A DNA stretch of 58,918 nucleotides, filler included, from Platydemus manokwari (Eukaryota): assembly GCA_037951405.1 (NCBI GenBank). It is 5 parts of 5 records of this genome, joined end to end, with 100 filler letters (N's around TTAATTAATTAA, not from the genome) between each part and the next. Parts side by side here need not be neighbours in the genome. Positions count along the whole stretch, not along the records: positions 41,584 to 58,918 come from JBBMOY011104775.1; 4 more parts are not named here. One strand, given 5' to 3'. Made by a program: the position numbers and the translations under genes. Positions within the stretch are counted from its first letter, which is position 1, and the number at the start of each line of letters is the position of its first letter. Under the pieces are notes generated by a model. It searched no databases. It was not told the origin of the DNA and saw only the letters and a program-made list of their open reading frames with translations. Of the stretch, positions 14,696 to 58,918 are shown piece by piece.

Positions 14696-14726
14696 TCTTT
14701 TGTCTTTTTGTCTTTTTGTCTTTTTG
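14696..14726. repeat. Short tandem repeat (TCTTTTTG) x ~4
   Basis: tcttttg tctttttg tctttttg tctttttg. Confidence 0.8.
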
Positions 14727-15189
14727 AGGTCTACATTTTCAAAGTTGTATGATAAAGTTAACGTAACCACCTGTTGATTATTCGTTGGAACGCTGTCTCG
14801 TATTTGATGAAAAACTATTGTTTTGTTTATCTTGTTTAAATGGTATCAACACAATGGTCAAAAGGTTCAAATATATAAGACACAAGTTGATAGTGCGCAA
14901 TTGTTACATTTGAGGTTGATAGATTCTACTAAATTATTGGCCATCACTATCTACGTTTTATACCAACCTACTCAGTTATATTCGAACACCAGGTATCTAA
15001 TTAACCTTAATTAATTGATCTTCTTTCATTTCGAATTTCAACAATCTATATAAAGATGAGTAGAAAGGTGTAGATAATGGAATTGTTAGATTATTAACTA
15101 ACACTGAAAGTTGGAAATTATGATTTGAATTACAGAATCAATCCGGGAGCAATTGCAACTAAAAATCATAATAAAATGACAATAGTTAA

Positions 15190-15610
15190 TCCCTCAAGAC
15201 GGGATCAGCACCCAAAAATTCAATACAGAAGACTGGCTGTCGGAAAAATCACACAAAAATCACTAAACAGAAAATGAAGGTTACCGATCCAAAAAGAATA
15301 GCAGTTACTCTTGGAATCCAAATCCTTTTTTGAGCTTATTGTGTGTGTCCACTTGATTTCCTAACACTTCGTTTTTCAATTCAATTTACAATTCCTCTTA
15401 TATCTCTCGTGCCATTGGCGAATATCGGTGTTTGTTGCCATTTGTTGGTATGGGCCAATTGATCATTGATTTCTAAATACGAATCGATATATTGAAGGAA
15501 ACTGTTTGACTATTGGGACTTGCGCTTATTGAATTTGTGTATCAACCTTTTGAGAGTTATTTTCATAGTTTCCGTGAACATTTTGGATTGCTTTTGACCT
15601 ACTCAACAGA
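15190..15610 (+). repeat. Diverged dispersed repeat, copy 1
   Basis: Shares colinear blocks with 17610-18047: GATCAGCACCCAAAA, GTTACCGA, TAGCAGTTACTCwTGGAA, TGTGTGTG..CTTGAT, and terminal TGAyCTACTmAACA. Confidence 0.75.
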
Positions 15611-16899
15611 ATCATTTTATATTTTACTGCTATATCAGTCTCTTCTATTTTCTCACTAGATTCATTATCACTTTTATCAGTCTCTATATATATTTAATAT
15701 ACCACTGATCGGTTCCGAAAAAGTGATGAATTATATTTAAAATGATTTCGGTTATCCAAACAAACCTTAATGGCGACTTACCAGTTGAACAGATGAACAC
15801 AGTTGACAATAACATTTTTTATTATTACTATGACAGCAATTGATATAAATTTTTAACTATAATTTGATACAAAGAAAAGTTGGATTATAAATATAACAAT
15901 TCATAGAAGTTTTATGATCAATAAACCCTATTGGATAAATATGTTTCGTAAGAATCAGCGTAGATAGTGGTGAAGTTATAGATGATTTTACAATCAAAGA
16001 TCTAACGTGTGTCGGGAAGAAATCTTCTTGGGAAAAAGGTCTTTAGAATATTTAATATTTAAATTATTTTCCAGTATATACTGTGTTTATACGCTTCTAG
16101 TCTTTTAATTGAATTGGATTTCGTGATTGGACTTCACATTTTCACACAAAAATTAAAGCTCGGTAACCCCATATAGGAAATTTATTACACAATAAATAAT
16201 AAAGCCCTATAATATACCAGTTTATCAACAATAAAATTAAAACTAACAATGTAACTAACAATACTATTTCTCAAGGGATTTTGGCTATCGGTCATTTTAC
16301 AAAAAATTGACTGAAAATTTCATTGGCAGTTGTAGAGATGGTGTTTTGTAATTAAATGAAGTTGAATTTAAAGAGTTCCACAGAACCGTATGTACGACCA
16401 TGGATAAAACTAATTTTACAAATATAATATTTATTCGAATTCATTTCGAAATTAACTTGAGAATACAAAACCGAATTAATTAAATGAATGGCAATAAAAT
16501 CGGGATATACTTGCAAAAATATTTGATAAAATGTTCTCCAAATAAAAGGGAAACACAAATGTAAATTGTTCATACTGAAATTTAAATGTTAGCGTTTAGT
16601 GTCGAAAAGTAATTTTTAAATTAAATGTTTCCAGCTAAATTTTCATTTCCATTTAAACAAAATATGGGCTCTATGTGCAACCACTGTTAATTCACTTTAT
16701 TTTAATGCAAATGGCTTTGTTCTCATGCGGTATTAAAATTTCCGAGTCTTTGTTCGATTATTTTTGCCCAAACTTCTTCATCGCTGTCTTTATTATAATT
16801 TTTTTCTTTATAAAATATCCTCTTTGTTTTGATAATATTTTTTTAAAAAAAAATTATTTTATTATTCTATATTTTATATTTTGATCCACAATATCGAGG

Positions 16900-17480
16900 T
16901 TTTTATTTATTTAAATTTGATTATATTGGGATCAATCGATTGTAAACGTGTTAAATTTGTGTTGTTTTTAATAAATTGTTGCACTAAACATTTACTTGGC
17001 TTCTCGTTCAGATAAACATGACCCTTTAGCAAGCTTTGAACCAAATCGTTATCAAGTTTATAAATCGAGCTTATGTCGTTGATTGTATATATAGAATCCA
17101 ACAGATTAATTCTGCCTCTTTTATAATACAATAGTTTTTTTTAATTTTTTTATATTTTACTGTTTAGTAAATAAATCCCTATAATTTATTTACCGTTTTT
17201 TCATTAACCAACTCCATTGTTTGTCGAAATATTCGAATATATTCTTATAAAAATATTCGTATACATTTGACATAACCAGATTACTGTTGTAACTCTACGT
17301 GTTGTGATCTTTCATTCTTATTTCTGTTACATCGGATTTCATAACTATTGATAATAGCAGATTAGCGTCAGTAGATAAAAAATCTAAGAAAGTGATAGAC
17401 TCCAGTTGACGTGTTTCCAGTATTTTAGGCGGTTCATAAGCTTACTTTAGTGCCCCAAGGATTTGCACTGGCGCTCTTTT
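16900..17480 (-). mobile_element. Possible decayed DNA-transposon (MULE-like) transposase fragment
   Basis: Broken frames with LSTDA./SAIINSY (cf. MULE TD.E.AI.NA) and NIFEYFDKQWSW (cf. F..YF...W). Confidence 0.2.
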
Positions 17481-17609
17481 AAGGAGCTATTTATAATTAA
17501 TAATAGGTTTTTAATCAATAATTAAACCTGAAAATAATGTTGACCAAAATGTTACAATCTCAATCACAATAACTACAGTTAAACCTCTTTCACATCAACG
17601 ACAGTCTAT

Positions 17610-18047
17610 CACGCAAGATGTGATCAGCACCCAAAAGTCAAAGACAGAATAGAAAACAACCAAAAAAATGGTTTCTGAAAATCATGCAAAATTACGAATA
17701 ATACAAGTTACCGACCAAACAAGACTAGCAGTTACTCATGGAACTCAACTTCTATTTTAGACCTACTGTGTGTGCCTGCTTGATGTCACGGGCCTTCTTT
17801 TTCCATTTTCTGTATTCGGTCTGCTTGAACTTTTCCTCGTATCTTTTATGCTATTTGCAGATATTTGAGTTTTCTGCCATTATTATTATGTGCCTATCAA
17901 TTCTTAAGAGATAAATATGGATTAATATTAGAACGAATCTGATTAGCTGATGCACATGTGTTTATCAGATCTGTGTGTGTCGACCCTTTTAAGATTATTT
18001 CATTTGTTTCTCTAAACTTTTTGGTTGATTTATGATCTACTAAACAT
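17610..18047 (+). repeat. Diverged dispersed repeat, copy 2
   Basis: Direct-orientation homolog of 15190-15610 (GATCAGCACCCAAAA at 17622, TAGCAGTTACTCATGGAA at 17727). Confidence 0.75.
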
Positions 18048-20311
18048 TAAGATGACTGGATGGTAGAAGATTAAAGATTCATCAACAATGGCTATCAACT
18101 TGAGATTCGGTATTTGAAAATTATTTTATTAACGCAGGCTAATTAAAATTTGTCTATATTTTAGAATTGGATTAGCCTTCAGTCAAAATGTTTATATTTA
18201 TATCTTTTTTCAACGATAGTAATTAATATCAATAAAATCAAATATTGTTTTTCGAGAAAAAAATGGATACAAATTGTTTTTTATAACGCAACACGTGAAC
18301 ATTTTATTATAAAATCAAAATAAATATGAAATCTATAGGAAATTGGTACCTAGGTTAAAGGTGTTTAACTGAAATGACTTACTACTCCACAAATAATCTT
18401 ACTCGAATATTTTGGAATAAAGATTGGAGTGGAACAGAAAGAATTTCATTAGATCATCTATTATGATTAAAATCTTTACAAAACAAATTTTATCTTAAAA
18501 ATTAATGTAATTTTTGTTCTTCTATTATATTCTAAATATTTTATATCATGCGTTAATTAAGCTGGTTGCATAGGGCGGTTGATTTTTTTTTTAAATATTT
18601 TCATCTGCGAGCCAATTACTTCTCTTTAATTTAAAAATGTTAAGTAACATAAAGAAAGATTCACAGGTGCTCCAAATACATCTGCAATGAGCATTGCTTG
18701 AAGATTCAGTTTGAAAAATCTTAATTCCATACAAGCTTTTGAATTTAACTATTTCTATAATTAACTCCAAGCGAGTTCAACCGCACGAATGAAGGCCCTA
18801 ATCTTCGTATGATAATCATAATAATTGTTTGATTTTTATACATTACCGTGATCTCAGTGTGATTCTTTAAACCCAACAGACGAGTTCTTGTTATTTCCAC
18901 AAACTGACTATTGAAAAAACAATATTTGAATTATTGATCTAAATTTATTGATCTATAAAGTATATTTTTTATGCTTGTTTATATATCAATTCTTTAAAAC
19001 CATTTTAGTGTGTCAACTCTATGAAACAAATTAATGTGTTCACTTTTTGTAAAAATTCCTGGAATTATTATCCATGATGATGATCTGATGTTACGAATTT
19101 TAAGAACAATAATATTTTTCTATTTTTATTCTTATTGCTAAAACCTTGAAAGAGCGAGGACATGGTTCAATTATTGACAACTAAACTATTAATAAGAATT
19201 TAATTTTTAAGATAAATAATAATTTTATTAATAACAACAAGAATATCTAAAAGCGATTTTCCATAATAATCAATGAATGCCCTAGCTTATAATTGGAAAC
19301 CACTAGAAGAGATCTTTGCTTGAATTTGTTCAACAGACATTTTGCCAAGACTTCAAGTGAACGTGAATTCGATTTTTTATCAACTACTGATCGATATTAT
19401 ATATCCACCGTGTATCATTTCACTATCGAACTTTACTTCAAAGCAACACCTTCAGGTGTTTAATTTTGATCCAAGAGAAATGATTTATTAACCGTTCTTT
19501 ATTTAAAGTTGTTGCGTAAGGTTTAATTGTTGTTTTTAAAACATTATTAGCTGTAATTTTTATATTCATTGTAATCCTTGTATCAATCAATAAATCCTAG
19601 TGTATGTAATAGCTTAAGGATCGAAGAATTAATAATAGTAAATTAAATAAATATCATAAGTTTCAGCGAATTTAATAGTATTGAGACTGATAATAAAATA
19701 CATAGAATCATTGTTGACGCACGCATTATCTTCATATGATATTGTTGCACAAAGTGAAGAAATTAATCATGAATATAGACTGTTGTAACTGCGACCTTGA
19801 ACCATAACTCAATGAGACTGATCAAGACAGCAGTCATCCTCAATAAATTCGAATAACAAAAGAATAAATAAATCTCATAAGACTCAAACACAACGTATCC
19901 ATATAATTTAATTAAATACACAGAAAGAAATTCATTCAAATATCAAATTTTTATGGGAATCACAGAATTACAAAGATTATCGCACTAAATTACGCTAAAA
20001 TATGGTATTAAACAGACTTAAGAAAAGACGACCTATCGAAATTTATCATAAAGTTTAATTAATAAAGATTTTTTTGTGGCAACTTATGACACAAACCAAC
20101 ACTTTCATCGATTTGAATCCACAAATCATTTTGAAATCATTTGTGTCAATTCAAATTTTTCCAATTTTACCACCTTCGATTCTTTTCCTAGACTATTGAA
20201 ACAATCAACAAGGTTTTTTGGTGAATTCTAATTGATGTTGATCGGGGTATAAAGTCCTTTTCCTTATTTTATGAATTGATTAGAATTGATCTACTAGTCG
20301 ATTACCTGACC

Positions 20312-41583: not shown

Positions 41584-41875
41584 TAAAAAATATCATACTA
41601 ATAAATCGTGATAAACTCTGATGTTATTACCAGGAGAAGGATTTCTCTTAAAATATTGATCTTAAAATTCTTGGACGCCCTTACTGTAAAACGTTATTAA
41701 TAAAACCTGTATTCTACAATGACTCGTTATTTTAATCATGGCAACGATTTAAATTGTATTTTTGAATTGGATCGTACTTAGATATTTTAAATTTTACTAA
41801 ATCAGTGGTCTCGTTTATAAACTTTGAATCAATTAGATCACCTAAACATCAACCGCATATAATTATATTCTCTAA

Positions 41876-42345
41876 CTAACTCATTGGGTAGCCCTTAATA
41901 GGATTATAATATATGAGAATAATTTCAGACTCACCCCATATTCCGGAGGAATTCGGACAACGGTGGATGAAAATATGTAATTATTTTTTTTTCGTCTTCT
42001 ACGGCACAATACAATTATTCCACCAACAATAATTCCGACGATAATAATCGCTAGAACTGAAAAGATCAATGTGGGAACAATTTTGGAATCATTTTTATCG
42101 TCATCATCGTCATCGGATTTCTTTTTTTTATCATCGTCATCATGTTTGTCTTTACATCGGCCACTACCCATACTTAATCGGCAGTCATCACAGCATTCAT
42201 AAACCCATGGTCTGTCGTAATTCTCACAACAAAAGTTTGGGCACATTCTATGAATTTTTCTGCAAAACTCCAAAGCCTGACATTGTGGAATTTCGATGAG
42301 AATAATCGACAATAAAATCAACGTCGAAACCAAAATGAATTGCAT
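41876..42345 (-). CDS. Small type-I membrane protein, Shisa-like/WBP1/VOPP1/CYYR1-like (Cys-rich ectodomain, TM, PPxY)
   Basis: ATG 42345. Signal peptide MQFILVSTLILLSIILIEIPQCQA, Cys pattern C..C..CC..CC..C..C, D/K-rich spacer, TM LIFSVLAIIIVGIIVGGIIVLC, stop-transfer RRRRKK, then PPEY. A GTGAGT donor at 41934 and a 41-nt intron lead to a final exon 41876-41893 (GYPMS*). About 142 aa. Confidence 0.75.
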
Positions 42346-44430
42346 TGCAAGAATTGAATATAATCTTACAACGAAATTGATCCAAATAAAAAGTGATTGT
42401 TGAGCATCATTGATCACATATCAAAGGTCTCAATCGAAATATGATATAGAATATAATCAAAACTACTTAATAATTATCTTTCAATTTATAAACACGTGAC
42501 TTCTAGTCACATATGGCTCGATAGCCATTTAATAATTCACATTTAATTATATTATCAAAGCCGGTTTAGAATATCGTAGCACAAATTCATTTGTCAGTAA
42601 ATAATTAAATAAATAAATCACAAATAAATTGTTGATAATTGGTTTTCAGGACTTTCAGTTGTGGGTTCTTCGAGATTATTATTTGGATTTAAAAAAGGTT
42701 ATCGTCAGAGTTTAATATCTCAAAGAAATTTTAATTCTTGCTTAATCGATAAAATAAAAAATATCAAAAAAACTATCTGGTCACAATCTTTATTGATAAG
42801 GATAAAATAATAATTTCGATAAAATAAAATCATCAACATTAAAACGAAAGTCGATCATAACTGATGTTATCATTGATTGGTGAGTGTAGATATTATAAAT
42901 CATTATAAAATAAGTTGATAAATTTATTTTAAACAAACCTTGTATGATAAAAAACCAATTATAATCAAGAATATTAATATAAAGACTATCTGTGATTAGA
43001 ATTGATTCGTTTGTTTAAATATTGATTTTTGAGTGAAATTTTAAATTTTCAAAATCTACGTTTTCGTTTTTAAAGGCTTTCCGAACTAAATTTTCAAATG
43101 AAAGATATAAAGTGTCAAACACAATCTTGGGAATCATTTTTATTTTCACTGAGCCTCGTTCTAATCATTCGAAGATGGTTTTTTGTTTTTCTCTACTTTT
43201 GTGATGTAACAACAATAAACATGATAATGTAATAATAATAAGCTATTAAATACCAAGCTAATATTTCAATTCTGAGTCTGATGATCATATGTTATATAGC
43301 GGCAAAATAGAAAGACGATATTTGGTGGTACGAACTCAATCATAAATCTCCGGGGAAATATCTAGAATAAAGAGATTTAGATTTTAATTGTTAACTGGGT
43401 GTGTTACAATATTAAATTCCTTACGGATGACATTCCTCCCTCTATATATGATAAAAAATTATGAATTGCTGGAAGAAATGTGATGAAAGAGTGATTAATG
43501 ATGATATAGGAGAAAATGTTGATATAAAAATCAAACCCATTTTTTATGTGCGGGACGGAAATAAGTTAGAAATGAATGGATAGAGATGATCATGCAAATT
43601 TAATCAGATAACTTATAAACCAATAAACTGAGATTTGCAAATTTTATTTTTTCGAGGCCTTCATGCATTCTGAAATATTCTCGAAACATTTAGAAGCAAA
43701 ATTAAGATGTTTATCAATATGTTTTAGGCAATCCTCATACACTTTACCCTTCTCCCGGTGTGTACAAATTCTGAATACAATTAGAGAGCTAAACCTGACA
43801 AATCTTCCACACGAGAATCTATAGAAATCGTGCAATGTTTTTGGTTGGGTCGACTTGAAGTAGAAAAACTAGATCCACTAAAATAAGTTGATCGAAATTA
43901 GAAGAAAAAACATAAAAAAATTCATTACATTTTTGTATTTGTTTTAGGTCAGTGATATAAATGGGAAATTTCTATCAGATTCCACTGCAACCTTGTTCTA
44001 ATTTCAAAGCCAAATTGAAATGAGTTTTTGTCAGATAAGAATCTCAACGAGATTTATCTGAAGCCATGAATATCCCGTAAATACTTAAGCTCTGACTTCG
44101 ATGAGACATCATTTCTTCAAAATAATACCTCGTGTTTAAATTATTATTTTTATAAGGTTTCTTTTAATAAATGTGTTAGTATGCACTAAATGGTTTTTGA
44201 GATCGACTTACTAATCGATTTATGCTATTTGAGAATAGTTATTAGCCCATAATCGTACGTACAGGGATAATGAAAACCTACACTTTACTGGATTTATACA
44301 CGAGGTAATTAATAACAAAGGAATTTAAAAGTATCAAACCAATGGAAGTATATATTTTAAAATATTAATAACGATAGGAATAATATTTATTAACGATAAT
44401 TAATCAAATATTTTATCGACGTTCATATCG

Positions 44431-46233
44431 ATGGAATTTGAAAAATTCAGTCCACCTCGATTGCCGAAAAATTTGAAATCAAACAATTCAGAATTTCGGT
44501 ATGATTCTTGTCCGATCGACAGGCATTTCAATTCACCATCGAAATTAGTTCATCATTTAGGTGAACTACAGTTAGATAATGAATCACAATTATTTCAAAC
44601 ACCCAAAAATAATAAATCTTCTCGTAAAAGTACGGTGGCTGCTTATCAAAGAGTTTTCACCAAATATTCACCCTCTACTGAAACCGTTTCAAGTCCATTG
44701 AAAGCCTCACAAGTAAATCTCCAAAACGTTATCATGGAAACATCGGATACTTATATTGATATAAGCATATGGGTTGTTAATTTGAGCGAGCAATTCTTTT
44801 ACGACAATACTCTTCTTCTGTTGAATGGATCAAAGACCAATACGAATCAAATGAAACTCGTTATTCGCAGCAATTCCAAGCCTCCTGACGTTAGTTTCTT
44901 TGAAAAATTGGAGAATATCATTTATCTTGGAAAGGGAGCATTTGGGAAAGTGTACAGTTGCACTGATCTCCATACACAGACCCGATACGCCATCAAATAT
45001 ATCACGCCTGATTCGAAAGATTTCGTTAATCATTGTAAGCAGATCCTTAATTATATGGCTGAACGAAATTCCATTATTCGGGCCATGAACAGTCCATTTG
45101 TTGTCAAGTTTTTTTTTTCATTTCAAACGAAATCTGTTGGAGGCTTGTTTCTGTTTTTCGAATATTGTATCGGTGATTTGTACACTTTTATTACCCAAAT
45201 CGCCCACGGTGATTATTCCGAAATTTCATATAAGTTAGAGAATAATAATAAAGAAATAATTATGGAGTTGGATAAAAATATTGACGTTCTCGACGTATCG
45301 TTGTTATATATTTTTGAATTGTTTTGTGGACTCGATTTTTTGGTCCATTCGAATATCGTTCATCAGGATATCAAACCAGATAATCTCATGATTTCTGAAA
45401 CTCTTCATTTGAAAATAGCAGATTTTGGTTTGGTATATCGAACGAGAACGATTCATAGAAGATCTAACAAACTGCTGGTGAATCACAATGACATTGATAA
45501 AGCTGAAAGTAGCAATTATCATTTGTATATTGAAGGCACATATTATTATCAAGATTTCGAGATTAAGTTGATGGAATTAGATCGAGAAGGAAATCCTATG
45601 CTGGATGAAGTCTTAGAAAACAACACTCTCTTCGACACTCCAGGAATTTCCTATGATGATGACAATTTGAAGCCAGTATTTCTAACTGATACCTGGGCAG
45701 CTGGTATTGTATCGATTAATTTACTGTTTAGAGGATTCGATTTGTTTGATCCGGACTTGTTAGAAAATAAAAACCTGACGAACGTACCACAATCGAACTC
45801 AAACGAATTTCTCGTCCATCTTGTTGGTCGACAGTGTTTCTATAAAAAGTACATTTACCAAGGATTGATAAACGCTGGTGGAGAATGCCACCGAGAATTG
45901 ATGGAATTTCTTTCATCGATTTTCCAACCTCGACCAACTCGATCAAGCAATTTTGTGAAAGAAAAGACAATATATCATTTCACCGAAAAACGTTCCATGA
46001 AATATATTGATATGTACAAAATCGAACAGTTGAAATCGTTTCGAGATCGAAATTTTAGTTGTTCAAATATTTTCCTTTTTACGGTTCCTGAAAAAATTCG
46101 AAAATATTTTCCCATACGCGACAAAGCAGTCTTTCCAACATTTAAGAATCTGTTGAGAGGTCTTTCGAGGATTACTTGTGGGGAGGAAGTAATCGATTTG
46201 ACACCGGGTTTGGTTATAAATTATTTTCATTAA
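44431..46233 (+). CDS. Intronless Ser/Thr protein kinase, AGC/Greatwall(MASTL)-like, paralog 1 (600 aa)
   Basis: Uninterrupted ORF with LGKGAFGKVY, YAIK, MAERNSII..MNSPFVVKFFFSFQ (cf. Greatwall AERDALALSKSPFIVHLYYSLQ), HQDIKPDNLMIS..LHLKIADFG, GT..Y...E and TDTWAAG. Confidence 0.93.
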   Translation: MEFEKFSPPRLPKNLKSNNSEFRYDSCPIDRHFNSPSKLVHHLGELQLDNESQLFQTPKNNKSSRKSTVAAYQRVFTKYSPSTETVSSPLKASQVNLQNVIMETSDTYIDISIWVVNLSEQFFYDNTLLLLNGSKTNTNQMKLVIRSNSKPPDVSFFEKLENIIYLGKGAFGKVYSCTDLHTQTRYAIKYITPDSKDFVNHCKQILNYMAERNSIIRAMNSPFVVKFFFSFQTKSVGGLFLFFEYCIGDLYTFITQIAHGDYSEISYKLENNNKEIIMELDKNIDVLDVSLLYIFELFCGLDFLVHSNIVHQDIKPDNLMISETLHLKIADFGLVYRTRTIHRRSNKLLVNHNDIDKAESSNYHLYIEGTYYYQDFEIKLMELDREGNPMLDEVLENNTLFDTPGISYDDDNLKPVFLTDTWAAGIVSINLLFRGFDLFDPDLLENKNLTNVPQSNSNEFLVHLVGRQCFYKKYIYQGLINAGGECHRELMEFLSSIFQPRPTRSSNFVKEKTIYHFTEKRSMKYIDMYKIEQLKSFRDRNFSCSNIFLFTVPEKIRKYFPIRDKAVFPTFKNLLRGLSRITCGEEVIDLTPGLVINYFH

Positions 46234-46434
46234 ATTTCAGTCATCATAACCGGTGAATACTTTCTTTCTTTTACGTTTCCTATGAATACTCCAACGTATC
46301 GATTATATTCTATTTCAATATCATTTGTATTTATTAATATATTTATTATAATTTATTTCGTAGAAAGTTTTATAAAAGAATTACTATAATATTCTTTATT
46401 TAATTTATTGATTACGAAACGTGTTTCAGCAAAA

Positions 46435-46860
46435 TCAGTAGAAAGATTTCTGACAACGAGAAGCATTATCTGATTCATGGTAAAGCCTCAATACATAAGG
46501 AAATTTAAATATCATATTCCAACGAAATAAACGTGTTAATTTGGTTATTTTTTTATCACTTTTAATAGCGGCCTTAAATTGTACTCGATTCCAGAGACAA
46601 ATAGAGGCTAATGGAACATGTTGGGTTTCATGTAAACACATAACTTTTAAACTTTAAATTATATTAGCCCTCATCACGATACATTACAAAATATACATTG
46701 GAATGAATTAATGATTCTGAAATATACAGCAATACATATTTTCAGGACATCAAAACATATATTGATTGAATGCAGGCAATCATTCTTTCATTCATATCGC
46801 TGACATCACATGTGTAACCCAAATCATAACCTTGAATATTTATACTGACTCATTGGAAAT
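46435..46860 (-). pseudogene. Possible LRR-GPCR transmembrane-region relic F
   Basis: IFKVMIWVTHVMS (cf. LGR TM1 LRV.IW) and SINICFDVLKICIAVYFRII (TM2-like), in broken frames. Confidence 0.25.
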
Positions 46861-48364
46861 AATCTTGTGATATATTTTATATGAATTAAAATTTTAATCC
46901 TAATTTAATATAAAATCATATTTGTATAAAATTAAATTTATTTGATTAAATATTTGTATTTAAATAGATTTGTGGTGCCTTGACTTTTCAGTTCATTTTT
47001 AATGTGTGCCCTTTAAAATAGCAGCGGCTAACAATCCTGATACAGTTCATCTAGAAGCAAATATTATAACACTATGTGGTGATGGTGTTGGACATTGTCT
47101 GATTTGTGTTATAAAAAACTGTGTTTTATCAATAAATATTTGTATATTCTTAATAAAGAATAATTATTTAAGGAACGAGATTAATGAACAAACAACGTAA
47201 TTGTTTAAGATAGTCAACAAATAGAAAGATGAATAAAGGATAATAAATTAAATTTCTACAACAACTATACAGTGATAATACAGAAAAGAAAATATAAACG
47301 AAATCTATGACGTCACTAATAATTCTCGATCAGCAATCACTAATAATTAATAGCTTTGATTTCACTAAATTCGTTTCGTTAATCTGGGGAGATTGAAAAC
47401 TCCATTTTGGATAATAAAACTGCTACAAAAATGGTAAAAGAGATTTTAGATGGACCTAATTAATTCATAAGCCAATAAATTTAATGGAAAATTAATCATT
47501 ATTGTTGAGAAAATATATCTCAAATATATCCCAACCGGTTATTTCACAAAAATTCAATTCATCCTGATAACAATCAACAATGAATCCGGCATGAAATAAT
47601 CACATCTTTGTATCGGATTTCTACAATCGATGTCTTCATTCTATGAATAATTTTCAATTTGTTTTATCATCATAATTGTTAGCCTTTATGAAAACGCCGA
47701 CAATTGGAGAAAAAAAACACCGAATGTGAATTTAAACAACAGCAAATATCAAGATAATAATAGAAATTATTTTCTTATTCAGGAAAATCAATCAGAAAAT
47801 AAATCGTAATTCAAGATGCTCACAATTTTCCAATCACAGAACTGTTAAATATTTTTTTACAAAAATAGTGATAATAAGGGAAAACAGAAGAGATTATCTT
47901 TATAACCAAAAAATACGAGCAAATTAAAAAATAAAAGGCCAATCATTATTAAAATTGATCGAAATAAAGGACATAAATAAATAAAATTAATAAAATAATA
48001 CTGTTAAGACCTCTTAAGTTGGATTTGATTGGAATGCCACAATTTATGTCAAATATGGATTATATCAAATATATTGTTTGTGTTTATTGATTGTTTATCA
48101 TAGATTTAATAAATGATTTTAAATTGGATCGTCATGACAGTAGTTTATGTGGCACTTAACCAATTCTGGATACCCCGGTAGTTACCACAAATTCTACTGA
48201 GGATTGTTATTGTTGACTTCTTAGAGTATTTTACAAAATAACATTTAAAATAAATAATAAAATGATTATTAAAATATGTATGTTTGTTTATCTGAATTAT
48301 ATATATTATTATTATTGAATTTATCATTGAATTATTATTGAATTTGTTTAATCAAATTTTCCTC

Positions 48365-49060
48365 ACATCCTCCCATTTAAAATTATTAATTTTCTCCACA
48401 TTCCGTTTTATCATTGTACCATTTTTATCTTGTAATCGGTAACTCCCTTTATGGTTCTTTCCTATCACTTCATACGTGCCATCATATCTTTCTCAGTCTT
48501 TGTCCGGGACTTCTTTTATTACTAATACCTTGTCACCTATCTTAAATTTGGGTTTTGTTGTTTCCACCATTTTTCCACCGTCTTTCCAAAAATGTTTCCT
48601 TTAATTTCTACTCTGTCTACTGTGCTGTTGGCATGTCATTGTTATTTGTTTATTTTCCTCCCAAATATAACTTCTACTGGACTAATATCAATCATTTTTT
48701 GCGCCGTACCATTCAATGTGCATTTGATCTCAGATAATATTGAAACACACTTCGTGTTTTACATATTTTTTTCTACAGAAATGTTATAGTCTCTTTTTAT
48801 TCTAAATTGTTGCTCAATTTATCCAAATATTTTTATGATGATACGGACTGACAAAATTAGATTTGTTCCTATTCTAAAAGCCATCTCTTTGATTCGTAGT
48901 GACTCAAGGCACTTACCATAATCTACATATATTTATTTTGGTGTACCGTATTTTAAAACACATTGTTTCTGAATCACTTTTTTAATGTTTGTGGTTGTGA
49001 TTATTTCTGATTTATTATTACAAACATATACTCGAATTGATGACAGGTTTCTTCTAGAGC
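48365..49060 (-). mobile_element. Degenerate Ty3/Gypsy integrase 3' end with GPY/F module, polypurine tract and LTR start
   Basis: KYGTPK*IYVDYGKCLES, SPYHHKIFG*IEQQFR, LNGTAQKMIDISPVEVIFGRKI, FKIGDKVLV...RYDGTYEV...YRLQDKNG...RNVEKL, followed by GGGAGGA|TGT (PPT plus LTR TG) at ~48365-48374. Confidence 0.8.
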
Positions 49061-49560
49061 GTTACTTTTCATAATTGTGATGGCTTAATTTAAATGATAA
49101 AACAAATCTAAGTCGCGGATGCAGGTTGGTTACAAATCCTTGTTGAAAATGCTTGCTCATGATGTACAACAAAATCAAGAAGCGCAACCTGAAAGTGATT
49201 AAGCATAGTTTCGTGCATCAAAAAGCAAACTTAACGTCTCTGCTGGTTTTATTTTGAAAGATCTACCTGCTATAAACTTACTCGACATACTATCTTAAAT
49301 TAATCATAATCATGATTTCATTATTTTGTTTTCTCTTTCATCTTTTTAGCTTCTATTCATTTACATATATTACTATTTCACAACGATTTAAGTAAACCAT
49401 TTTGAAAATATTTTGCAGAAATTTTTTATATAGGGGAAAATATAAAAATATTTCGTAATATTAAATAATGGAAATAATTAATCAATTAATTTAATTAATA
49501 CATATTGATATTCAAATCTGAACTATTCGTGTTGTTCTGGTAATTTGATAGGCTAATAAT

Positions 49561-51405
49561 ATGCGATTAAGGAGTCATGTTAATGTTCCTGAACCAGCGG
49601 AGATTCCAATTCAGACATGTGTTGTCAAAAGACGTAAGTTGCCTCTCGATAATACAGGTACCTGTCCATTACAAAAAGAAACAACAGTAGATCAACCACG
49701 GCCCGTAAGAAAGAAACGTTCAAAAAAAGAACCTGAAAAATCCTTGCTCACTACTCCACAAACCAAATCTACCACTTCTTTGATCAAGCCAGATTATAGG
49801 AAAAGCACGACTGCTGGATGGTCAAGAGCATTTATGAAATTTTCACCAACAACCGAAACAAAAGTTAGTCCACTGAAAGCATCTCAGATTAATTTGCAGC
49901 ACATTGTATTTAAACGTTATGAACCATATCTGGATGTCTTTACTTGGGTAGTTAACATGAGTGAACAGTTCTTTTATGATAACACACTTCTATTATTAAA
50001 CAGCTCAAAGGCAGATGCAAGTCTGATGAAGAAACGAATTCGACACAATTATAAAGAGGTTGATGTGCATTTCTTTAAAAGTTTAGCTCAAATAACATTA
50101 CTTGGTAAGGGTGCTTTTGGTAGTGTATATAAAGCTACCGACAGCATCACAAATAAGAATTATGCTATCAAATATATCAGTTCAAAATCAAAAAGTGTTC
50201 TCGAACATTGTAGAAACATTTTAGATTATATGGCCGAACGAAATTCAATTGTTCGAGCAATGAATAGTCCTTTTGTTATGAAATTTTATTATTCACTTTA
50301 TTTGAAATCGGCTGAAGGATTATTTTTGTTTTTCGAATATTGTATCGGTGATCTTCATACTTATATGTCTCAAATATCTATTGACGACTACATTAAACTA
50401 TCAGAAAGATTGTTCAAAAACGAATCTGGAATCATACAGGACTTGGATAAAGATATTGGCGTGCTTGATGTGACGTTGATGTATATTTTTGAAATGTTTT
50501 GCGGGCTCGATTTTCTAGTTCAAGCTAACATCATTCATCAAGACATCAAACCGGAAAATTTAATGGTTTCAGAGATTCTGCATTTGAAAATTGGAGACTT
50601 TGGTTTGATATATCGAACTCGAACAATCCACCGAGACACAAATAAAATGTTGGTGAATCATGACGATATCGATACGACTGAGAGTAGCAATTATGCATTG
50701 TCGATCGATGGAACCCATGATTATGAAGATTTGGAAATTAAACTCATGGAATTGGAAGATGCTTCCGATCCACTCTTTAATGATGTTATAGAGAATAGCA
50801 AACGTTTTAATGTCAATTTACGATATGATACAGATATATTGGTACCAACCTTTCTCACGGATACCTGGGCAGCTGGAATCACATGTATAAATCTACTGTT
50901 TCGAGGATTTCATCTGTTTGATCCAGAAATGATCAGTGATGAGATTTTAAAAGGTGTACCTCGAACGAGTCTCAATGAATTCCTTGTCCACGTAACGACG
51001 CGGCGAAATCTGTATAAGAAATATGTTTATGGTGGTCTTGTGAATTCTGGTGGCAGTTGCCATAAGGAATTGATGGAATTTATCGCTTCCATCTTTGTAC
51101 CAAGAGAAATACGATCGAAAGGATATACGAAAAAAAAGTCCATTTATAAATACAGTAAGAAAATGAAGCTCAATTACATCGATATGGTTAAATTAGAAAA
51201 AATCAAATCTTTCAAAGATCGAGGTTTCAATTCGAAAAATATTTTCACATACATCGTACCGGAAAAAGTCAGAAAATTCTTTAAAAAAACCACCAAACCC
51301 AAATTTGCAACATTTGAATTGTTGCTGGAATCGATCGCCAAAAAGTCGTGTGGAAAATCTTTAATTGATCTCAAACCAGGCTTGACAATTAATTACTTTC
51401 AATAA
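49561..51405 (+). CDS. Intronless Ser/Thr protein kinase, AGC/Greatwall-like, paralog 2 (614 aa)
   Basis: Uninterrupted ORF with LGKGAFGSVY, YAIK, HQDIKPEN, DFG and TDTWAAG. Colinear with paralog 1 (identical blocks SEQFFYDNTLLLLN, GLFLFFEYCIGDL, YRTRTIHR, INLLFRGF). AATAAA overlaps the stop and recurs ~45-65 nt downstream. Confidence 0.93.
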   Translation: MRLRSHVNVPEPAEIPIQTCVVKRRKLPLDNTGTCPLQKETTVDQPRPVRKKRSKKEPEKSLLTTPQTKSTTSLIKPDYRKSTTAGWSRAFMKFSPTTETKVSPLKASQINLQHIVFKRYEPYLDVFTWVVNMSEQFFYDNTLLLLNSSKADASLMKKRIRHNYKEVDVHFFKSLAQITLLGKGAFGSVYKATDSITNKNYAIKYISSKSKSVLEHCRNILDYMAERNSIVRAMNSPFVMKFYYSLYLKSAEGLFLFFEYCIGDLHTYMSQISIDDYIKLSERLFKNESGIIQDLDKDIGVLDVTLMYIFEMFCGLDFLVQANIIHQDIKPENLMVSEILHLKIGDFGLIYRTRTIHRDTNKMLVNHDDIDTTESSNYALSIDGTHDYEDLEIKLMELEDASDPLFNDVIENSKRFNVNLRYDTDILVPTFLTDTWAAGITCINLLFRGFHLFDPEMISDEILKGVPRTSLNEFLVHVTTRRNLYKKYVYGGLVNSGGSCHKELMEFIASIFVPREIRSKGYTKKKSIYKYSKKMKLNYIDMVKLEKIKSFKDRGFNSKNIFTYIVPEKVRKFFKKTTKPKFATFELLLESIAKKSCGKSLIDLKPGLTINYFQ

Positions 51406-53219
51406 ATCAAATCACATATTTCTGGTGATCAAGTTTTATTTTATTGACAATAAAAATTTATTGAATAAAGATTTTAATTATGGTTGTGATTTTCACTTTT
51501 TAATAACCGTGAGTAAATAATATTGTCGGGTTTTCAATCAATAACTTATACTTATCGTAAAAATCAATCTATCACATTGTTGTACTTTAACCCGACAGAT
51601 GAGCTCGAATATTAAATAAAATCAAACACATTCGTGGAAATTTTTCATCGTTTACTAGTAACTAAAATAGATGTTGTTTAGACAAAAAGTCTTGGGAAAA
51701 GTTCAAGTTGAGTCTTCCTTTAAAAATTTGATTGTAAAGTGCGATTTAATGACCTTGTTTTCATTCAATCCAATTCAATGATTGATAAATCATCTTGTCA
51801 AAGATTTTTAACAAAAAATGTTTCCATCTATATTGCTGTTCAATCAGCCCGAGTTTTTCAGTCTTTGCCGTTCTGGGTTTTTTTTAATTCTGATTTTAAG
51901 TCGGAATCACTTCCGGAATTTATTCTTCTCTCTAGATTTCAATTCGATGAGTATTTTAAACATATTTTTATTTATTTCTGGTTCCGATGTCAAATATTAA
52001 ATTTATTTTTTATCTTAATCACTAATGGAGAAGGGTTTTTGATTAATATTTAATTATCTGGAATTAAATTTATTCTGCACGATTAATTTATCGATTACTG
52101 AATTGAATTTTATGGGTATTTATTTATCCTCTGGTACACTGTCCCGTCTATCTGAGTAAAGTATCAATCTGTCTATATTTTTCCAACAATACAAAACACA
52201 ACCCCACAATCTCTGCAAACACATTTCTTGCTCGGTTCTATTTCATATTTAGAGAGTTTTGGGAACGCAATCAATATTTGAACGGAATGTGCTGATTGTC
52301 TTCAGTAGTCATGCTATTTTAAAACCTACTTGAATGAATATTATCATAATTATTTATTTTATGTGCATTTCTTTAAGAAATTAACATCTTTAATAGTTAA
52401 TACAATTTTACCGACATTTCCTGTATTAATTTATTTTTTAAAGCATTATTTTTGTCAAACAATCCAGAATTTATTAGGTCATTACTTCTCTTTATTAATA
52501 TTTTGATTATTTTATTAATTAATTATGGTTTTGATAAAATAGAATGAATTGATTTTATACAAACAAATCCAATCAAAATCAACAAAAATAATTAATCGAT
52601 ATTGATCCTAGACAATCGATATCATTGAATAAAAACAAAATCGATTCAATTATCAAGAACATTTTCCTTAAGTTTTTATTCTTATCCAATACAGATTTTG
52701 ATCTTGATTTGAAAAGTGTAATAATTGATTTTCCCTTACGTAATTCAAACAATTTCATTAAAGGTCAGTGTGAAGTGAGACTACGTCAGTGTAAACCAAT
52801 TAAAATAATCGATTGTTACAAAAATTAAAAGTTCTAAAGACTAATAAAAGAAAGGAATAGCAAAATGAATCAAAAACGATAACAATTTTAAAAAATACGA
52901 AATATATAAACAAATAATGAAGTCAATGACTATGTCGGGGGTTATGTGATGAATATTTTCTGTAATTCAATGCCATTCCTAAAACACTGGTTCTAACATT
53001 AAGATACAATTTCATAATTCTCCATCATGGTCGATGACAAATGAATTTTCTAACCCTGGGCGTTCCATTCAAACTAGACATCAGTAGCAATTTATATATT
53101 CCTCCAGTCCCATAGATGCTAGCAATTTAATACATGTATAGTATTTTTGTGGTTAATCCAAAGTATATTTTCCAACAAGCATCTTGCAATCAAGTCTAAC
53201 CTAACGGTTAAATCATACT

Positions 53220-54450
53220 CTCTCCACTTGAAATCATTGTCATAAATGATTATAATGACCACTAGAGGATAAATCTCAAACATATTTTGACATTCCGGTA
53301 ACTGTTAACAGAATCAAATGATATGTGAAACAAATAAATCAAAACATCCTTCAGACAACATATATCTATGAATAATAAAGCAAGTCTCATTTTCACTGAA
53401 TGACTGATGAGGAAAATTTAACTTCGAAAAATCAGATATTGAAAAATTTGAATGTCGAAATATATTTCATTAATATTCCCAATGAGCTCAAATAGTAATG
53501 AATTAGTTGACGTTTAAAACGAATCTTTCATAATTGAAAAAATTCCAAATCACACCCTGTCCTACATAATTGGTACCGAATTCCTACGCTATCATCATGT
53601 GCTTCGATGATTTATAATTCAGTAGATTCTTACAAATCATTATATTCTATGATATTTATTTAAGTTTAGAAAATCCACAACAAATAACATGCCGCACTGT
53701 CATTGAAACATGTGATAATAATAGTAAATAAATAAAATTCGCATAAACAAATTTGGATCGAATAATCTAGATCAATTCTGACTAAGTAGAAACAATCTCT
53801 GAGATTGTCTGGTTGAATAAATTACTCTAGCAACTAATATTATTTTCACTCCAAATTGAAATCATAGTTAGATCACATGACTGATAATGAGAATGAATCA
53901 TTTATTCTATTATTTGATAATGCCGTTATCATTTTCGTAGACATTTATCAAATTAAAAACTTTCCCTCTGATGATGATTTTTCAATCGTTAGAGGTGAAA
54001 CACAGTTTATCGTTGGAACTGAACATATCATTTGAATAAATCCAGAACACATCTCACTAAGAGGATGAAATAAAAAAGAGACGGCATTTATAAATCAGTT
54101 TGTCTGAAAAATTGGTAGAATTTAGAAAAAAATCGAAAGGCAGATGCAGACAGAGAATCCATGAGCAATCAGTTCTTGAATTTATCACGTGCTTAGTCAT
54201 GTCGAACTGCTAGAAAAATTAATTTACCAATATTACGAATTATGAAAATTATCTTCTTTCAATTTCTTTGATGTAAAAAAAATTAATGATAGTGTTTAAA
54301 TACAGTTCTAAATTGGTCATGAATTTCTTTAATAATAAATCTCATTTCTTTCGATGATATGTGTCTGATTTCTTACATGATTAATTTTTCCCAATGACCT
54401 GACGAACTTGTAGACAAGAATGAATAAAAAGCAAGAGATGACGCTAAACA
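53220..54450 (-). pseudogene. Decayed, apparently intronless LRR-GPCR (GRL101/LGR-like) relic G
   Basis: Ordered motifs in broken frames: LRR-like IRNIGKLIF and DSLSASAFRFF, hinge ICSVPTINCVSPLTIEKSSSE, SAACYLL, and TM6-like VKMRLALLFIDICCL (cf. LGR AKRMA.L.FTDF.CW). Confidence 0.42.
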
Positions 54451-55449
54451 GTCAATAATTTTTTAAAAAAAATTGACCAATAAAAACATAAATCTACAAC
54501 AAGACAGAATCATTCCATTTTCAATGCAGACAAACAATGTCTATAATGAATCAATAATAGTTATTTAGAGTCTGAAATTTCGATAATTTGTGATTATATC
54601 AACAATTTTACACATATGGAAATCCAGTAATAAAAATACCAAATAAAATATAACTAGAAAATCAAGACTATTGTTATTACCTTATGACCTGAAATTATAA
54701 GTTCATCTATTTTAGATTTAATTAATTGATTTCAACTTGTGACATTTTATGTATCCATATCAAATTTTACGGACGCAACTCAATTATTCGAACTATCTCA
54801 AAGTTCATCGAAAATAATCAATTGAATTCTGAATTATCAGATTAATCTTATGAACCTAGCCTCACATAGTTAATAAGTAATGATATAAATGTTAATTTCG
54901 TTGCAATAAACAGTAAACAGATAACAAAACACTTCTTAATTAATAATATTTTTGCTACTGCCATAGTTACACTGAAGTCAATTACTGCAATATCTAACAA
55001 ATTTTAATATAGAATCAAATCAATAAGTTTATTTACTGAACTACACATACGAACAACAACAGACAGTTGTGAATGTGTGTCAAATATGTTTAAAAGCGAC
55101 ATTGACTCTCTAATCGACGGTTGTCATGCAATTGCCATAGCGACAGTGCCTAACTATGCGTTACTATTATAAATTTCAATAAGGACACGGAGAAATTGTC
55201 TGCTTTTAAGGTCAGAAAAATAGTGAGTGAAATAAAAAAAGATGTATAATAGAATCAGTATTCACGCAACAAATTTTATTAAGGCTGTTTATACAATTTG
55301 TTGGAAAACCAAAATTTAATGAGTACAGATGATAATAATAATAATCGATATACATCAATAAATCATTGAAATACATGTTACAACACGCAAATATAATAAT
55401 AATTAACAATTACAAAGAGTTGTGGAACTTGTTGAGCCAAAAATCAATA

Positions 55450-58401
55450 CTGGTCTAAAATTGAGTGTTTTTAACATAGATGGAAAGCCAGAAATTAATA
55501 TCATTGTAATAAGAAAAAAATAATTTCTTATGCATTAATATATGCATATGTAGAGATCAAAACAAAAAATCAATGATCTATAATTATAATATTAATAATA
55601 TACATCAAAGCACACAGGGACATCAATAAATGGAAAACAAATTTGCAGATTCAAATAAAAATTATGAATTTTCGTCTATGTGAAATCAATTTTTGCAATA
55701 AATTTATCATAAAAACCAATTTTTTAAAATACAACAAATAATAATAATAATAATAAATAGAAAAATTGATAAATGACATGTATTAATGGACAGATTAAAG
55801 CGCCAAACAAGGCGGCGGCAATCAATTCTAACACACTGAACATGATGAAGCGTCTACATTTATCAACAAAAGGCAACAAATATAATAACCATAATATATA
55901 TGTATATATATATATATAATAAATATGTAAACACAGACGAATATTGGAATTTCTAATCATTCTAAAAATAAAACATAATGAAATCACAAAGGCTACAATA
56001 AAACACGATATTATTGTATCATGGATGAGCGGTGAATAATTACGCAATATTCGCACATACGGCATCATCATCATCATCAATCACACTTGATTACAATGTA
56101 CAATCAAAAAAGAGTAATCATTCAATATAGCACATGCAATATATCACTCGTCAGAAGTTAACTATTCGAAATTTGAAATCAATAAAATTAATAATAATTG
56201 ATTAATAAAATCGATAATCAATACAAAAATCAATAGATAATATCAAACAAAGTGATTTAATGCCTGATTGAGATACTAATAATAATACAATAATAATGTT
56301 AATAATAATAAATTATGCTTCAATGACTTGACAGTCAATTTTACAAAACCAAATTGAGATAATTCAAAATCGAGAAACTGATTTGTAGCGATAAATATTA
56401 ATTTTTCAATCTGTAATGTATATCATCAAATGGAAATAGCTATCATTATATATATAATATTTATCATATATACAATATAACAGAGAGCCATTAATTATAT
56501 TTTGCCTATAAATGAGCCTGGAATTCTGAAAACAATGAAATGCACATTATTAGTAACACAATAACACAATATAATCAATAATACTCAAAAAGGGATTAGT
56601 TTAAAAGTCAATTATTCAGCAATCTAGAAAGTATATACATGTAGAAGAGATTTAAAAAGCAACTTTTAAAAACACATTGATATAATCGATGATTGAAATC
56701 ATGATTATTGTTAATCTTTGGTCATTAAAATCAATAAACATACAATCGCGCACACAACGATACACACAAGCTCACACCATATTTTTATAACAGAATAAAT
56801 CAACAATAATGATTGTTTTCTTCATTTTTTTTAAAATTACTTTTGTTAAAAATAGATAATTGCAAACCATGAAAGACTATGATTCAAATTGGCAGATTTG
56901 GTTGAGATGGATCGATAATTGATGTTTTCCAACCAGTTTCTGATATATAGAATAGAATTTTATATTGTTTTTATATTGCTGTCGTTTTGCAAATGTTACA
57001 AAAAAGCACCCAGAGTATCTAATAACCATAACAATTTATATTACTGTGTATTACTGAGGTCCTGGAACATCTTTATGACTCGGAAACAGTACAAAATAAT
57101 AATAATAACAATATCACACACACAAGCACATACACGAGTACACACACAGAGAAATTGGACAATTTATTTACAAAACAAAAATCTGAGCGAATCAGTAATT
57201 TCAAAAATTAAAACACATCAAAGATGAATGGACTAATGATATAGGTTTGGTGATTTTAGAGTTTCTGATATATTAGACAAAATTGAAAATAGCACATCAA
57301 TTTAGTCGGAGTCAGCTGATTGAAATTCCACTAAAATACAGAAATAAGCGCACACAGCACAGACGCAAACACAGCAAGAAATGATCACAGATAGCTGGTT
57401 CATCTACCTCGGCAAAAGATGTACAAATTCTTATAATATAACAGTGCTACTGCTGCACAGCATTAGCAGTAGAATATATTTATATATGTATATATATGTC
57501 GATATGAAGATTGATATTGCAACAAATACAACAGCTGTGTAAAAATACCAACGACCGGACTTTGAGGTTCATGAGGACAAGCACGCACAGACACAATTAC
57601 AAACATTAACAATACACAACTTAGTACAATAAATTTTAGCAGTTGATTAATAATAATAAATAATAATAAATGATAAAATAATTACATGCGTACACATAGT
57701 AGTAGTAATAATAATATTATAATAATTCATCGGTTCGATGTCAAATTAGACTGTCCTAGCGCGCTTCAAGACCAGATCATAATAGTAATAAATATATAAT
57801 CAGTGAGCATCGTAAGACACTGGCGATTGAAAATAGAGCGACTATGATAAATCACAACTATTGAGAGAGCCATCAATACAAATAAGGACCAGCAAAAATC
57901 AAACAAAAAAATCAAACCAACGCATGTGCTGACGACATAACATAACTTGCAAATATATGAAAGAATAATCGAAATAATTGAAAATGCTTCTTGGTCTCAT
58001 TTGATCACAATTTGAATATATAGATGATTTTCGTTGGGATAGGAAAGATATTCGGGCACTGAAATCGATAGACACAGAACATATAGAGGAAAGCGAATGG
58101 TCTAGGTAAAAATTGAACCAAGGCAAAATAACAATGATAATAATAGAGTAAGAATATTGATAATAATAATAATAATAATAAATACGTCATAATATAGCAG
58201 TGGTATGATAGCGCTGCTGCTCTAACACTGAAACTACTTTGTGATGATGATATACTGATAATATAATATAGAGACACATCAAATGTGTCATCAATTGTTT
58301 CTAATATTCTCACTGAGCTTGTTTGGTGTAGAGCAAGAGAGATAGTTCATTTTCGTTACCGTCAATTGAGTAACTGAGATGCGTATATAATGCGTATAAT
58401 A
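55450..58401 (-). other. Probable long 3' UTR of the RRM (GW182-like) gene
   Basis: About 3 kb directly downstream of the stop at 58402, with strong A/C skew on + (U/G-rich transcript), many (AAT)n, (CA)n and (TA)n tracts, and no credible ORF. Confidence 0.4.
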
Positions 58402-58614
58402 TCAATTAGCACCGGACATGTAAAGCATGTAATCTTCTTGATTATTGATTAGTTCAACTCGAAGAGAAAGTTGATTTTGAATAATATTGATGTATCGATA
58501 GGCCTCTTGAATATTAGCAAACTGTACGATAATCGATTGAGCTTGATGATTTAAGTGGAAATTGATTATCGCTCCAGATTCCATGCAAATTGATTTAATC
58601 AAATCAATATGCTT
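58402..58614 (-). CDS. TNRC6: Terminal exon encoding a GW182/TNRC6-type RRM
   Basis: TTTCAG acceptor (AG at 58615-58616), phase 0. KHIDLIKSICMESGAIINFHLNHQAQSIIVQFANIQEA resembles TNRC6 [36 protein letters not shown]. Possible preceding exon ~58673-58714 (ILFILCQHHWKVLM). The gene continues beyond the window. Confidence 0.55.
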   Translation of the reverse strand, partial: KHIDLIKSICMESGAIINFHLNHQAQSIIVQFANIQEAYRYINIIQNQLSLRVELINNQEDYMLYMSGAN

Positions 58615-58918
58615 CTGAAATAGATGATCAAATTATTTTTTTTATCAATACATTTTTAATCATACAGATCACCATAAGAACTTTCCAATGGTGCTGGCAT
58701 AATATAAATAATATCTGGAAACTTTAAATGTTAGTTAAAGCAACTTTAAAAAAACATATCCAGTAAGAAACATACACAAATAAGGCATCAAAAGTTCTGC
58801 ATGCTGATATATTAAACTGTTGTGTTCTCTCTCTGCAATCGTCAGTGCCCAAGACATATAGGGCAACTTGTGTTAAGTGATCTCCACAAATGTTGGTCTT
58901 TTGCCATTAGTTTTGTTG

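Follow-up and report, generated by a model that had tools for sequence, protein, structure and literature searches.

The 58,918-nucleotide window of Platydemus manokwari DNA analysed here (GenBank assembly GCA_037951405.1) joins five parts of this genome, one of which, an N-free piece of ~17 kb from record JBBMOY011104775.1 (positions 41584-58918), carries two uninterrupted protein kinase genes in tandem, K1 and K2. Our analysis was confined to this piece. We regard the two genes as probably functional, anciently duplicated tandem paralogs that encode ~600-amino-acid (aa) Ser/Thr kinases of a small, lineage-restricted family, with an AGC-type fold and with Greatwall-type kinases (MASTL, Rim15, IRE) as their nearest relatives. 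An earlier note on this DNA had described a pair of uninterrupted open reading frames (ORFs) of ~1.8 kb lying 3.3 kb apart, and an ORF scan of the piece recovered exactly these two long frames, of 600 and 614 aa and both on the plus strand; the next longest measures 178 aa. Given the local frequencies of A (0.37) and T (0.34), a run of 600 codons would be free of stops with a probability of ~5e-23. K1 and K2 are each colinear with four full-length relatives from the first Met to the stop codon with no internal gaps, and because of this gap-free colinearity each coding sequence (CDS) is a single exon, a statement that concerns the CDS and leaves untranslated regions outside it. The G+C content of the ORFs (~0.33-0.35) exceeds that of their flanks (~0.26-0.30) by a gap that is usual for coding sequence.

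Table 1. The K1/K2 tandem pair: features, window positions and catalytic motifs of K1
Feature	Positions	Strand	Residues	Description and basis
K1	44431..46233	+		Single-exon CDS, 600 aa, K1-type kinase; ORF, translation, Pfam Pkinase (E 2e-24)
K1 variable N-terminus	44431..44622	+	1-64	18% identical to K2; predicted disordered
K1 family-specific N-terminal extension	44623..44907	+	65-159	Invariant columns; 58% K1/K2 identity
K1 protein kinase domain	44908..45945	+	~160-505	Pfam, family alignment, AlphaFold pLDDT >90 over most of the core
K1 C-terminal tail	45946..46230	+	506-600	Invariant columns, model confidence, structural alignments
Intergenic spacer, 3.3 kb	46234..49560	.		Unlike any other part of the piece; holds very high-copy repeats
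K2	49561..51405	+		Single-exon CDS, 614 aa, K1 paralog (57% identity)
K2 protein kinase domain	50083..51117	+	~175-519	K1 motifs shared, HQD included
G-loop			K1 G167, G169, G172	
VAIK Lys			K1 K189	
Alpha-C Glu			K1 E211	
Catalytic loop			K1 H311-Q312-D313, K315, N318	
DFG			K1 D331-F332-G333	
P+1/APE equivalent			K1 G369-T370...Y373-x-D375-x-E377	
Subdomain IX			K1 D420-T-W-A-A-G425	
Subdomain XI Arg			K1 R501/R504	

In a BLASTP alignment of the two proteins that covers 557 aa and has 8 gap positions, 57% of residues are identical and 75% are positives; the earlier note had given ~540 aa of colinearity. Across aligned codons, nucleotide identity is 60% overall and 64%, 74% and 43% at positions 1, 2 and 3, and different codons are used at 162 of the 325 residues that K1 and K2 have in common, which matches the many synonymous differences reported before. 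By the Nei-Gojobori method, the proportion of synonymous differences (pS) is 0.78, which is beyond saturation, and nonsynonymous divergence (dN) is 0.32-0.38; dN lies well under the saturated synonymous divergence (dS) in every conserved region, and variation is unconstrained only over residues 1-64, where K1 and K2 are 18% identical. The only DNA similarity in the piece joins 44770-45755 to 49945-50927 (68%) and falls within the coding core. Neither the flanks, for which the earlier note had seen no evident similarity, nor the spacer yielded any match between K1 and K2 at the DNA level, and the piece holds no other repeat pair. Judged from these comparisons, the pair is an ancient tandem duplication that has long been under purifying selection, as had been proposed; most simply, it is an old tandem duplication whose noncoding parts have diverged past recognition and were later invaded by repeats.

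Domain architecture and family membership

Both proteins match Pfam Pkinase at E 2e-24, and the match spans only the region from the Gly-rich loop to DFG. The remaining kinase domain is present but interrupted by inserts, as seen in the family alignment and in a profile-profile alignment to IRE-like kinases. The residues G167/G169/G172, K189, E211, D313, K315, N318, D331, G333, G369 and D420 (K1 numbering) are invariant in 10/10 family sequences. The C-lobe is likewise complete: E377, D420 and R501/R504 are conserved, an hhalign alignment to the IRE-like profile runs through GTxxY..E and DTWAAG, and the AlphaFold model has a full kinase fold. Since every catalytic residue is retained across the family, K1 and K2 should be active Ser/Thr kinases. 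The arginine of the HRD motif has been lost throughout, the family having HQD in K1, K2, P0001-P0004 and P0011, HTD in P0013, and HAD in P0014 and P0016, which by sequence makes its members non-RD kinases. Three inserts set the domain apart from that of canonical kinases. The first (~20 aa) separates the GDL motif from the catalytic loop; the second (~15-20 aa) lies between DFG and GT, giving a spacing of 38-40 aa in the family (38 in K1) where canonical kinases have 16-24 aa; and the third (~30 aa) separates the APE-equivalent Glu from DTWAAG. The activation segment reads (L/I)x(I/M)xGTxxYxDxE and, unlike the T-F-C-G-T-x-x-Y-x-A-P-E of AGC kinases, has no conserved Ser/Thr four residues before the Gly.

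The kinase domain is flanked by conserved segments on both sides. The N-terminal extension, for which neither a Pfam family nor an ESM Atlas match was found, carries invariant YSPSTE and SPxK motifs (S80 P81, S88 P89 K91) and a SEQFFYDN helix; the S80 and S88 motifs are proline-directed, CDK-type consensus sites. The C-terminal tail contains a beta-hairpin (residues 509-526) that is modelled confidently, a conserved F568-x-x-F571 motif ~63 residues past the kinase core with a predicted local distance difference test (pLDDT) score of ~90, and a conserved end, PG-x-x-INYF; neither a phospho-acceptor nor an aromatic residue follows FxxF. The invariant columns indicate that both extension and tail are under strong constraint. 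The N-terminus of K2 (49561-49800) is basic, with KRRK and RKKRSKK clusters that resemble nuclear localisation signals, and K1-type members do not have such clusters. These basic N-termini hint at nuclear or chromatin localisation of K2-type members. Two KRGRPR motifs, AT-hook-like, were noticed in the N-terminus of P0003.

The family is very small. A word-based search of 5.8 billion clusters returned only four full-length relatives of K2 (P0001-P0004, 50-58% identity), with the next match at E 6e-8; the closest relative of K1 is P0004 (65%) and that of K2 is P0001 (58%). An HMMER profile search of 1.84 billion representatives gave five proteins at E <= 1e-30, namely P0004, P0011 (35% identity, HQD), P0013 and P0014 (26% identity each) and the artefact P0012. 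Below these, a fragment, P0016, scored E 3e-26, and generic kinases start at E 7e-27. P0012 (Tagetes erecta, 1069 aa, E 2e-63) was rejected as a relative: it consists of ~15 tandem copies of the segment from catalytic loop to DFG, its profile score is inflated by these repeated segments, and it is an odd gene model or a tandem exon array unrelated to the family. The relatives are unnamed UniParc-only entries or short Logan/ENA contigs, and a literature search found no description of the K1/K2 family. An unrelated match whose UniParc accession number resembles theirs is from a helminth genome, a faint clue to the lineage in which the family occurs. In trees, K1 and P0004 are sisters (support 100/100), and the branching order of K2, P0001, P0002 and P0003 is not settled. 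If P0004 comes from another species, the duplication that gave rise to K1 and K2 is older than that split. By these searches, then, the family is very small, lineage-restricted and uncharacterised, in keeping with the earlier proposal of a lineage-specific kinase family. Six metagenome loci (L023, L028, L065, L072, L085 and L094) encode kinases that align from K1 residue 73 on, including part of the N-terminal extension, at 25-29% identity.

Fold and nearest known kinases

AlphaFold run on the 10 family sequences alone produced an unusable model (pLDDT 49), whereas adding the 59 nearest kinases to the alignment raised pLDDT to 78, with a predicted template modelling (pTM) score of 0.84. The top Foldseek matches of this model are YANK1, GRK2, ROCK1/2 and RSK2, and the best 50 VIA-align entries are all AGC kinases (Z 25.4-27.2; PKC-iota 27.2, Akt1 26.6, PDK1 25.8), a ranking in which kinase groups differ by small amounts and for which the model alignment was rich in AGC kinases. 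As modelled, the K1/K2 fold is closest to that of AGC kinases. The canonical members of this group (PKC-iota, Akt1, PDK1, GRK, ROCK and YANK1) are the best structural matches, at Z 25-27 over 270-310 aligned residues, and the alignments reach into the C-tail. The family differs from them in having no Pkinase_C match, no acceptor after FxxF and no conserved activation-loop Thr, and identity is 18-26%. The AGC hydrophobic motif, F-x-x-F-[S/T/D/E]-[F/Y], docks in a pocket of the N-lobe, and the family's FxxF lies at roughly that motif's distance from the core. The model does not support a docking of the terminal INYF in this pocket, the last 10 residues having pLDDT 26-41.

By sequence, Greatwall is the nearest named kinase in each comparison that we made. 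It is the top match in PDB both for K2 alone (57 bits, versus ~50 for PLK2, PDK1 and RSK) and for the family profile (89 bits, versus 81 for PKC-theta and ~77 for MST3, CDK2 and NDR), and the first non-family matches in a profile word search are fish proteins named 'greatwall' (34% identity over a third of the query). Scored by hhalign against the family profile, animal Greatwall reached 298 (36% identity, 152 columns), Rim15-like kinases 296, IRE-like kinases 293 and PKR-like kinases 213; the Rim15-like (fungal) and IRE-like (plant) labels were assigned by motifs, by the length of the insert and by the names of a few records, and are not curated. An enlarged DFG-to-GT spacing characterises AGC kinases of the Greatwall/Rim15/IRE type, and among the 96 nearest non-family representatives whose motifs could be located, ~70 have such a spacing (40-789 aa). 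The labelled kinases among those ~70 include lamprey and thrips Greatwall, and PKR-like kinases make up a second, smaller group of neighbours. Scanning the nearest kinases against Pfam revealed no accessory domain that would tell them apart.

Comparison with Greatwall/MASTL (PDB 5loh, 8v5h) reveals both a common scaffold and a series of departures from it. From the N-lobe to DFG, identity is 34-36%, and the common motifs include AERN..(l)...SPFvV.l.YSfQ, LyLv.EY and H.D.KPDN(l/m)lIS..GH.K(l/i).DFGL; both have an AGC-type fold and extra activation-segment residues at the same position. Unlike Greatwall, in which the DFG-to-GT spacing is 234-789 aa in the animal clade, the family has a spacing of 38-40 aa and no long non-conserved middle region. 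HRD and GTPDYLAPE, which do not vary among 15 Greatwall sequences, are replaced in the family by HQD, HTD or HAD and by GTxxYxDxE. The family also has inserts ahead of the catalytic loop and beyond the APE position, as well as a ~95-aa N-terminal extension and a 95-aa tail with its own FxxF, both unique to it. The Rim15/Cek1-like and IRE-like kinases have hhalign scores equal to that of animal Greatwall, and in the IRE-like group the DFG-to-GT spacing of 44-50 aa is near that of the family and the alignment runs through GTPDYLAPE as far as the DWWS motif. Rim15- and IRE-like kinases differ from the family, however, in being RD kinases and much larger multidomain proteins with no common N-terminal extension or tail, and since they come from other kingdoms they are not orthologs of K1 and K2.

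In a maximum-likelihood (ML) tree of 105 kinases (287 columns, LG+G4), the family is monophyletic (support 100), sits on its own stem of 1.34, and falls outside the well-supported animal Greatwall clade. This is a classic long-branch position. Forcing the family together with the animal Greatwall clade was not rejected by an approximately unbiased (AU) test (54 rows; log-likelihood difference, delta lnL, 13.3; p 0.17). In our view a Greatwall-type ancestor is the most likely origin of the family, and one-to-one orthology with Greatwall is not supported. The designation 'Greatwall-like' in the earlier note holds in the sense of nearest named family by sequence, whereas orthology is not supported by the 38-aa spacing against 234-789 aa, by the lost RD arginine or by the position of the family on its own long branch outside the Greatwall clade.

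Surroundings of the pair and alternative explanations

The spacer between K1 and K2 contains three repeats, which are mutually dissimilar and show no clear terminal repeats. In a run of genomic DNA reads (X1), summed word depth is 5,700-18,500 over 46800-47199, 5,900-13,700 over 48200-48599 and ~400 over 48800-48999, compared with ~13-15 over both ORFs. Repeat searches in the spacer gave only AT-rich matches at chance level. Contigs from the same run are near-identical to the window and cover genes and spacer alike at ~13-15x, but because the run probably derives from the same source sample, it provides no independent support. A search for RNA runs that contain the locus yielded this genomic run and no other. 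An Rfam scan of the piece had no match, Pfam searches with eight neighbouring ORFs gave nothing above threshold, and no other recognisable gene, with or without introns, was found within 41584-58918. The earlier contrast between the intronless pair and an intron-rich neighbourhood, in which all other intact genes are spliced, was drawn from unrelated parts joined in the window and not from this piece. Three smaller features were noted in passing. When read from an internal ATG, the 178-aa ORF (41881-42417, minus strand) combines a signal-peptide-like start with a Cys-rich block, a low-complexity stretch of Asp and Lys, a single transmembrane helix and a stop-transfer sequence, RRRRKK; it has no Pfam family above threshold and could represent either a terminal exon or a small membrane protein of type I. 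An AT-rich (AAT)n array of ~18 copies lies at 58127-58181, and an AT-rich minisatellite with an 11-23-nt unit in 2.5-5 copies lies at 48288-48345.

How the founder of the family came to be intronless bears on two further readings. It could have started as a processed copy, retroposed from a spliced gene for a Greatwall-type or other AGC kinase and later duplicated in tandem, with the intronless state as the footprint of retroposition: both CDSs are single exons colinear with their relatives from Met to stop, and P0002 and P0004 are uninterrupted ORFs on contigs of 2.2-2.3 kb. Neither a poly(A) remnant nor a target-site duplication can be seen downstream of the two stop codons, but this absence is uninformative, since such marks would not be expected to last through so much divergence. 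Flank similarity is missing as well, no parent gene was identified within the 17-kb piece, and intron loss or an ancestrally intron-poor gene would fit the data equally well. For the retroposition inferred in the earlier note, the single-exon CDS is the sole support and keeps it plausible, while the poly(A) tract and target-site duplications are lacking; we consider such an origin possible, if on the unlikely side. Acquisition from a bacterium or from a virus, giant or otherwise, followed by duplication, would also account for intronless genes in a narrow lineage, and giant viruses encode many Ser/Thr kinases. IMG/VR contains no relative; BFVD offers generic kinase folds at 12-19% identity, weaker than the cellular AGC matches; bacterial and archaeal genomes contain only generic Hanks kinases (22-28% identity over the N-lobe) and JGI metagenomes only generic kinases (25-33%). 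The G+C difference between ORFs and flanks is merely that of coding sequence, and the closest relatives are eukaryotic Greatwall-type kinases. Since the viral, bacterial and metagenome scans contain no family member, a viral or other horizontal origin, which the earlier note had also entertained, is unsupported, and we regard it as extremely improbable.

Two other readings concern what K1 and K2 are rather than where they came from. They might be fast-evolving co-orthologs of Greatwall/MASTL with a shortened middle region. Greatwall/MASTL phosphorylates ENSA/ARPP19 at the FDSGDY motif and thereby inhibits PP2A-B55, and on this reading K1 and K2 would still do so at mitosis or meiosis. Greatwall is indeed the best named match in every sequence comparison, the extra activation-segment residues lie at the position of the Greatwall insert, the conserved SPxK sites point to regulation by CDK, as in the case of Greatwall, and the AU test leaves a common clade unrejected. 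Weighed against this are the ML tree, the much shorter spacing, the alteration of HRD and GTPDYLAPE, the equally high scores of Rim15-like and IRE-like profiles, and an N-terminal extension and tail that have no Greatwall counterpart. A separate mastL gene has moreover been reported in parasitic flatworms (PMC12688102), which counts against co-orthology if the host is a flatworm. On balance, co-orthology appears quite unlikely. The other reading, that K1 and K2 are decaying or non-catalytic copies (pseudokinases or unexpressed relics, with frames open by chance or kept for a scaffolding role), draws on the lost HRD arginine, the degenerate P+1/APE motif (GTxxYxDxE) and the lack of expression evidence, the last of which also counts against our own interpretation. 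Nevertheless, the phosphotransfer residues are all invariant across the family, dN is far under saturated dS in every conserved region, an open frame of this length would hardly arise by chance, and non-RD kinases are commonly active. We regard this reading as very improbable.

The interpretation that we favour, of an active, lineage-restricted, Greatwall-related kinase with an AGC fold present as tandem paralogs, has further points to contend with. In the ML tree the branch of the family arises between the PKR-like kinases and the Greatwall/Rim15/IRE supergroup, and not within the latter. Because the tree keeps the family outside, the case for its derivation from AGC or Greatwall-type kinases depends on similarity scores and on the ranking of folds, each of them sensitive to rate and composition. 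The abundance of AGC kinases in the alignment behind the good model may have biased the course of the tail, confidence in that model is low for the last 10 residues and for the N-terminal extension, and Pfam does not detect Pkinase_C in K1 or K2. In addition, the ESM Atlas neighbours of the whole protein are generic non-AGC kinases (SBK1, PIM and STK35), and the regulatory mechanism set out below is inferred only. With these points taken into account, we still hold the identification to be likely.

Proposed regulation and meaning

Activation-loop phosphorylation is usually not needed by non-RD kinases, S/T-P-x-K is the CDK consensus, and in AGC regulation an FxxF tail motif docks on the N-lobe. 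On the basis of this general knowledge of non-RD loops, S/T-P-x-K sites and FxxF docking, we tentatively propose a regulatory mechanism by analogy. As non-RD kinases, K1 and K2 would be constitutively competent and probably independent of activation-loop phosphorylation; they might be gated instead through their N-terminal SP sites, phosphorylated by CDK- or MAPK-type kinases; and the FxxF tail would dock on the protein's own N-lobe and stabilise it, as in AGC kinases. K2-type members would probably act in the nucleus. The pair itself probably arose long ago by ordinary tandem duplication, from a founder made intronless by retroposition or intron loss. That the scheme of a competent kinase, gated at SP sites, stabilised by FxxF and nuclear in its K2 type is correct as a whole seems to us conceivable but rather doubtful.

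A broader and more speculative picture, which we think unlikely in its entirety, is that of a side branch of the Greatwall-type AGC kinases, specific to this lineage, in which the RD arginine and the long middle region were lost and an N-terminal extension with CDK sites was gained. It would form a kinase module downstream of CDK, with a nuclear K2 type and a non-nuclear K1 type, and might exert cell-cycle or germline control in parallel to canonical Greatwall. K1 and K2 are a real, undescribed kinase subfamily within a known superfamily, which amounts to a solid gene-family annotation and not to a new kind of system. If active and expressed, they would add to the kinome an undescribed subfamily, restricted to a narrow lineage of animals and distinguished by three inserts and a non-RD loop, together with a unique regulatory N-terminus and a tail like that of AGC kinases, and would show how a Greatwall-type kinase scaffold can be remodelled. 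More generally, kinases restricted to one lineage are candidates for the control of that lineage's own biology and, in relatives of parasites, candidate targets for selective drugs.

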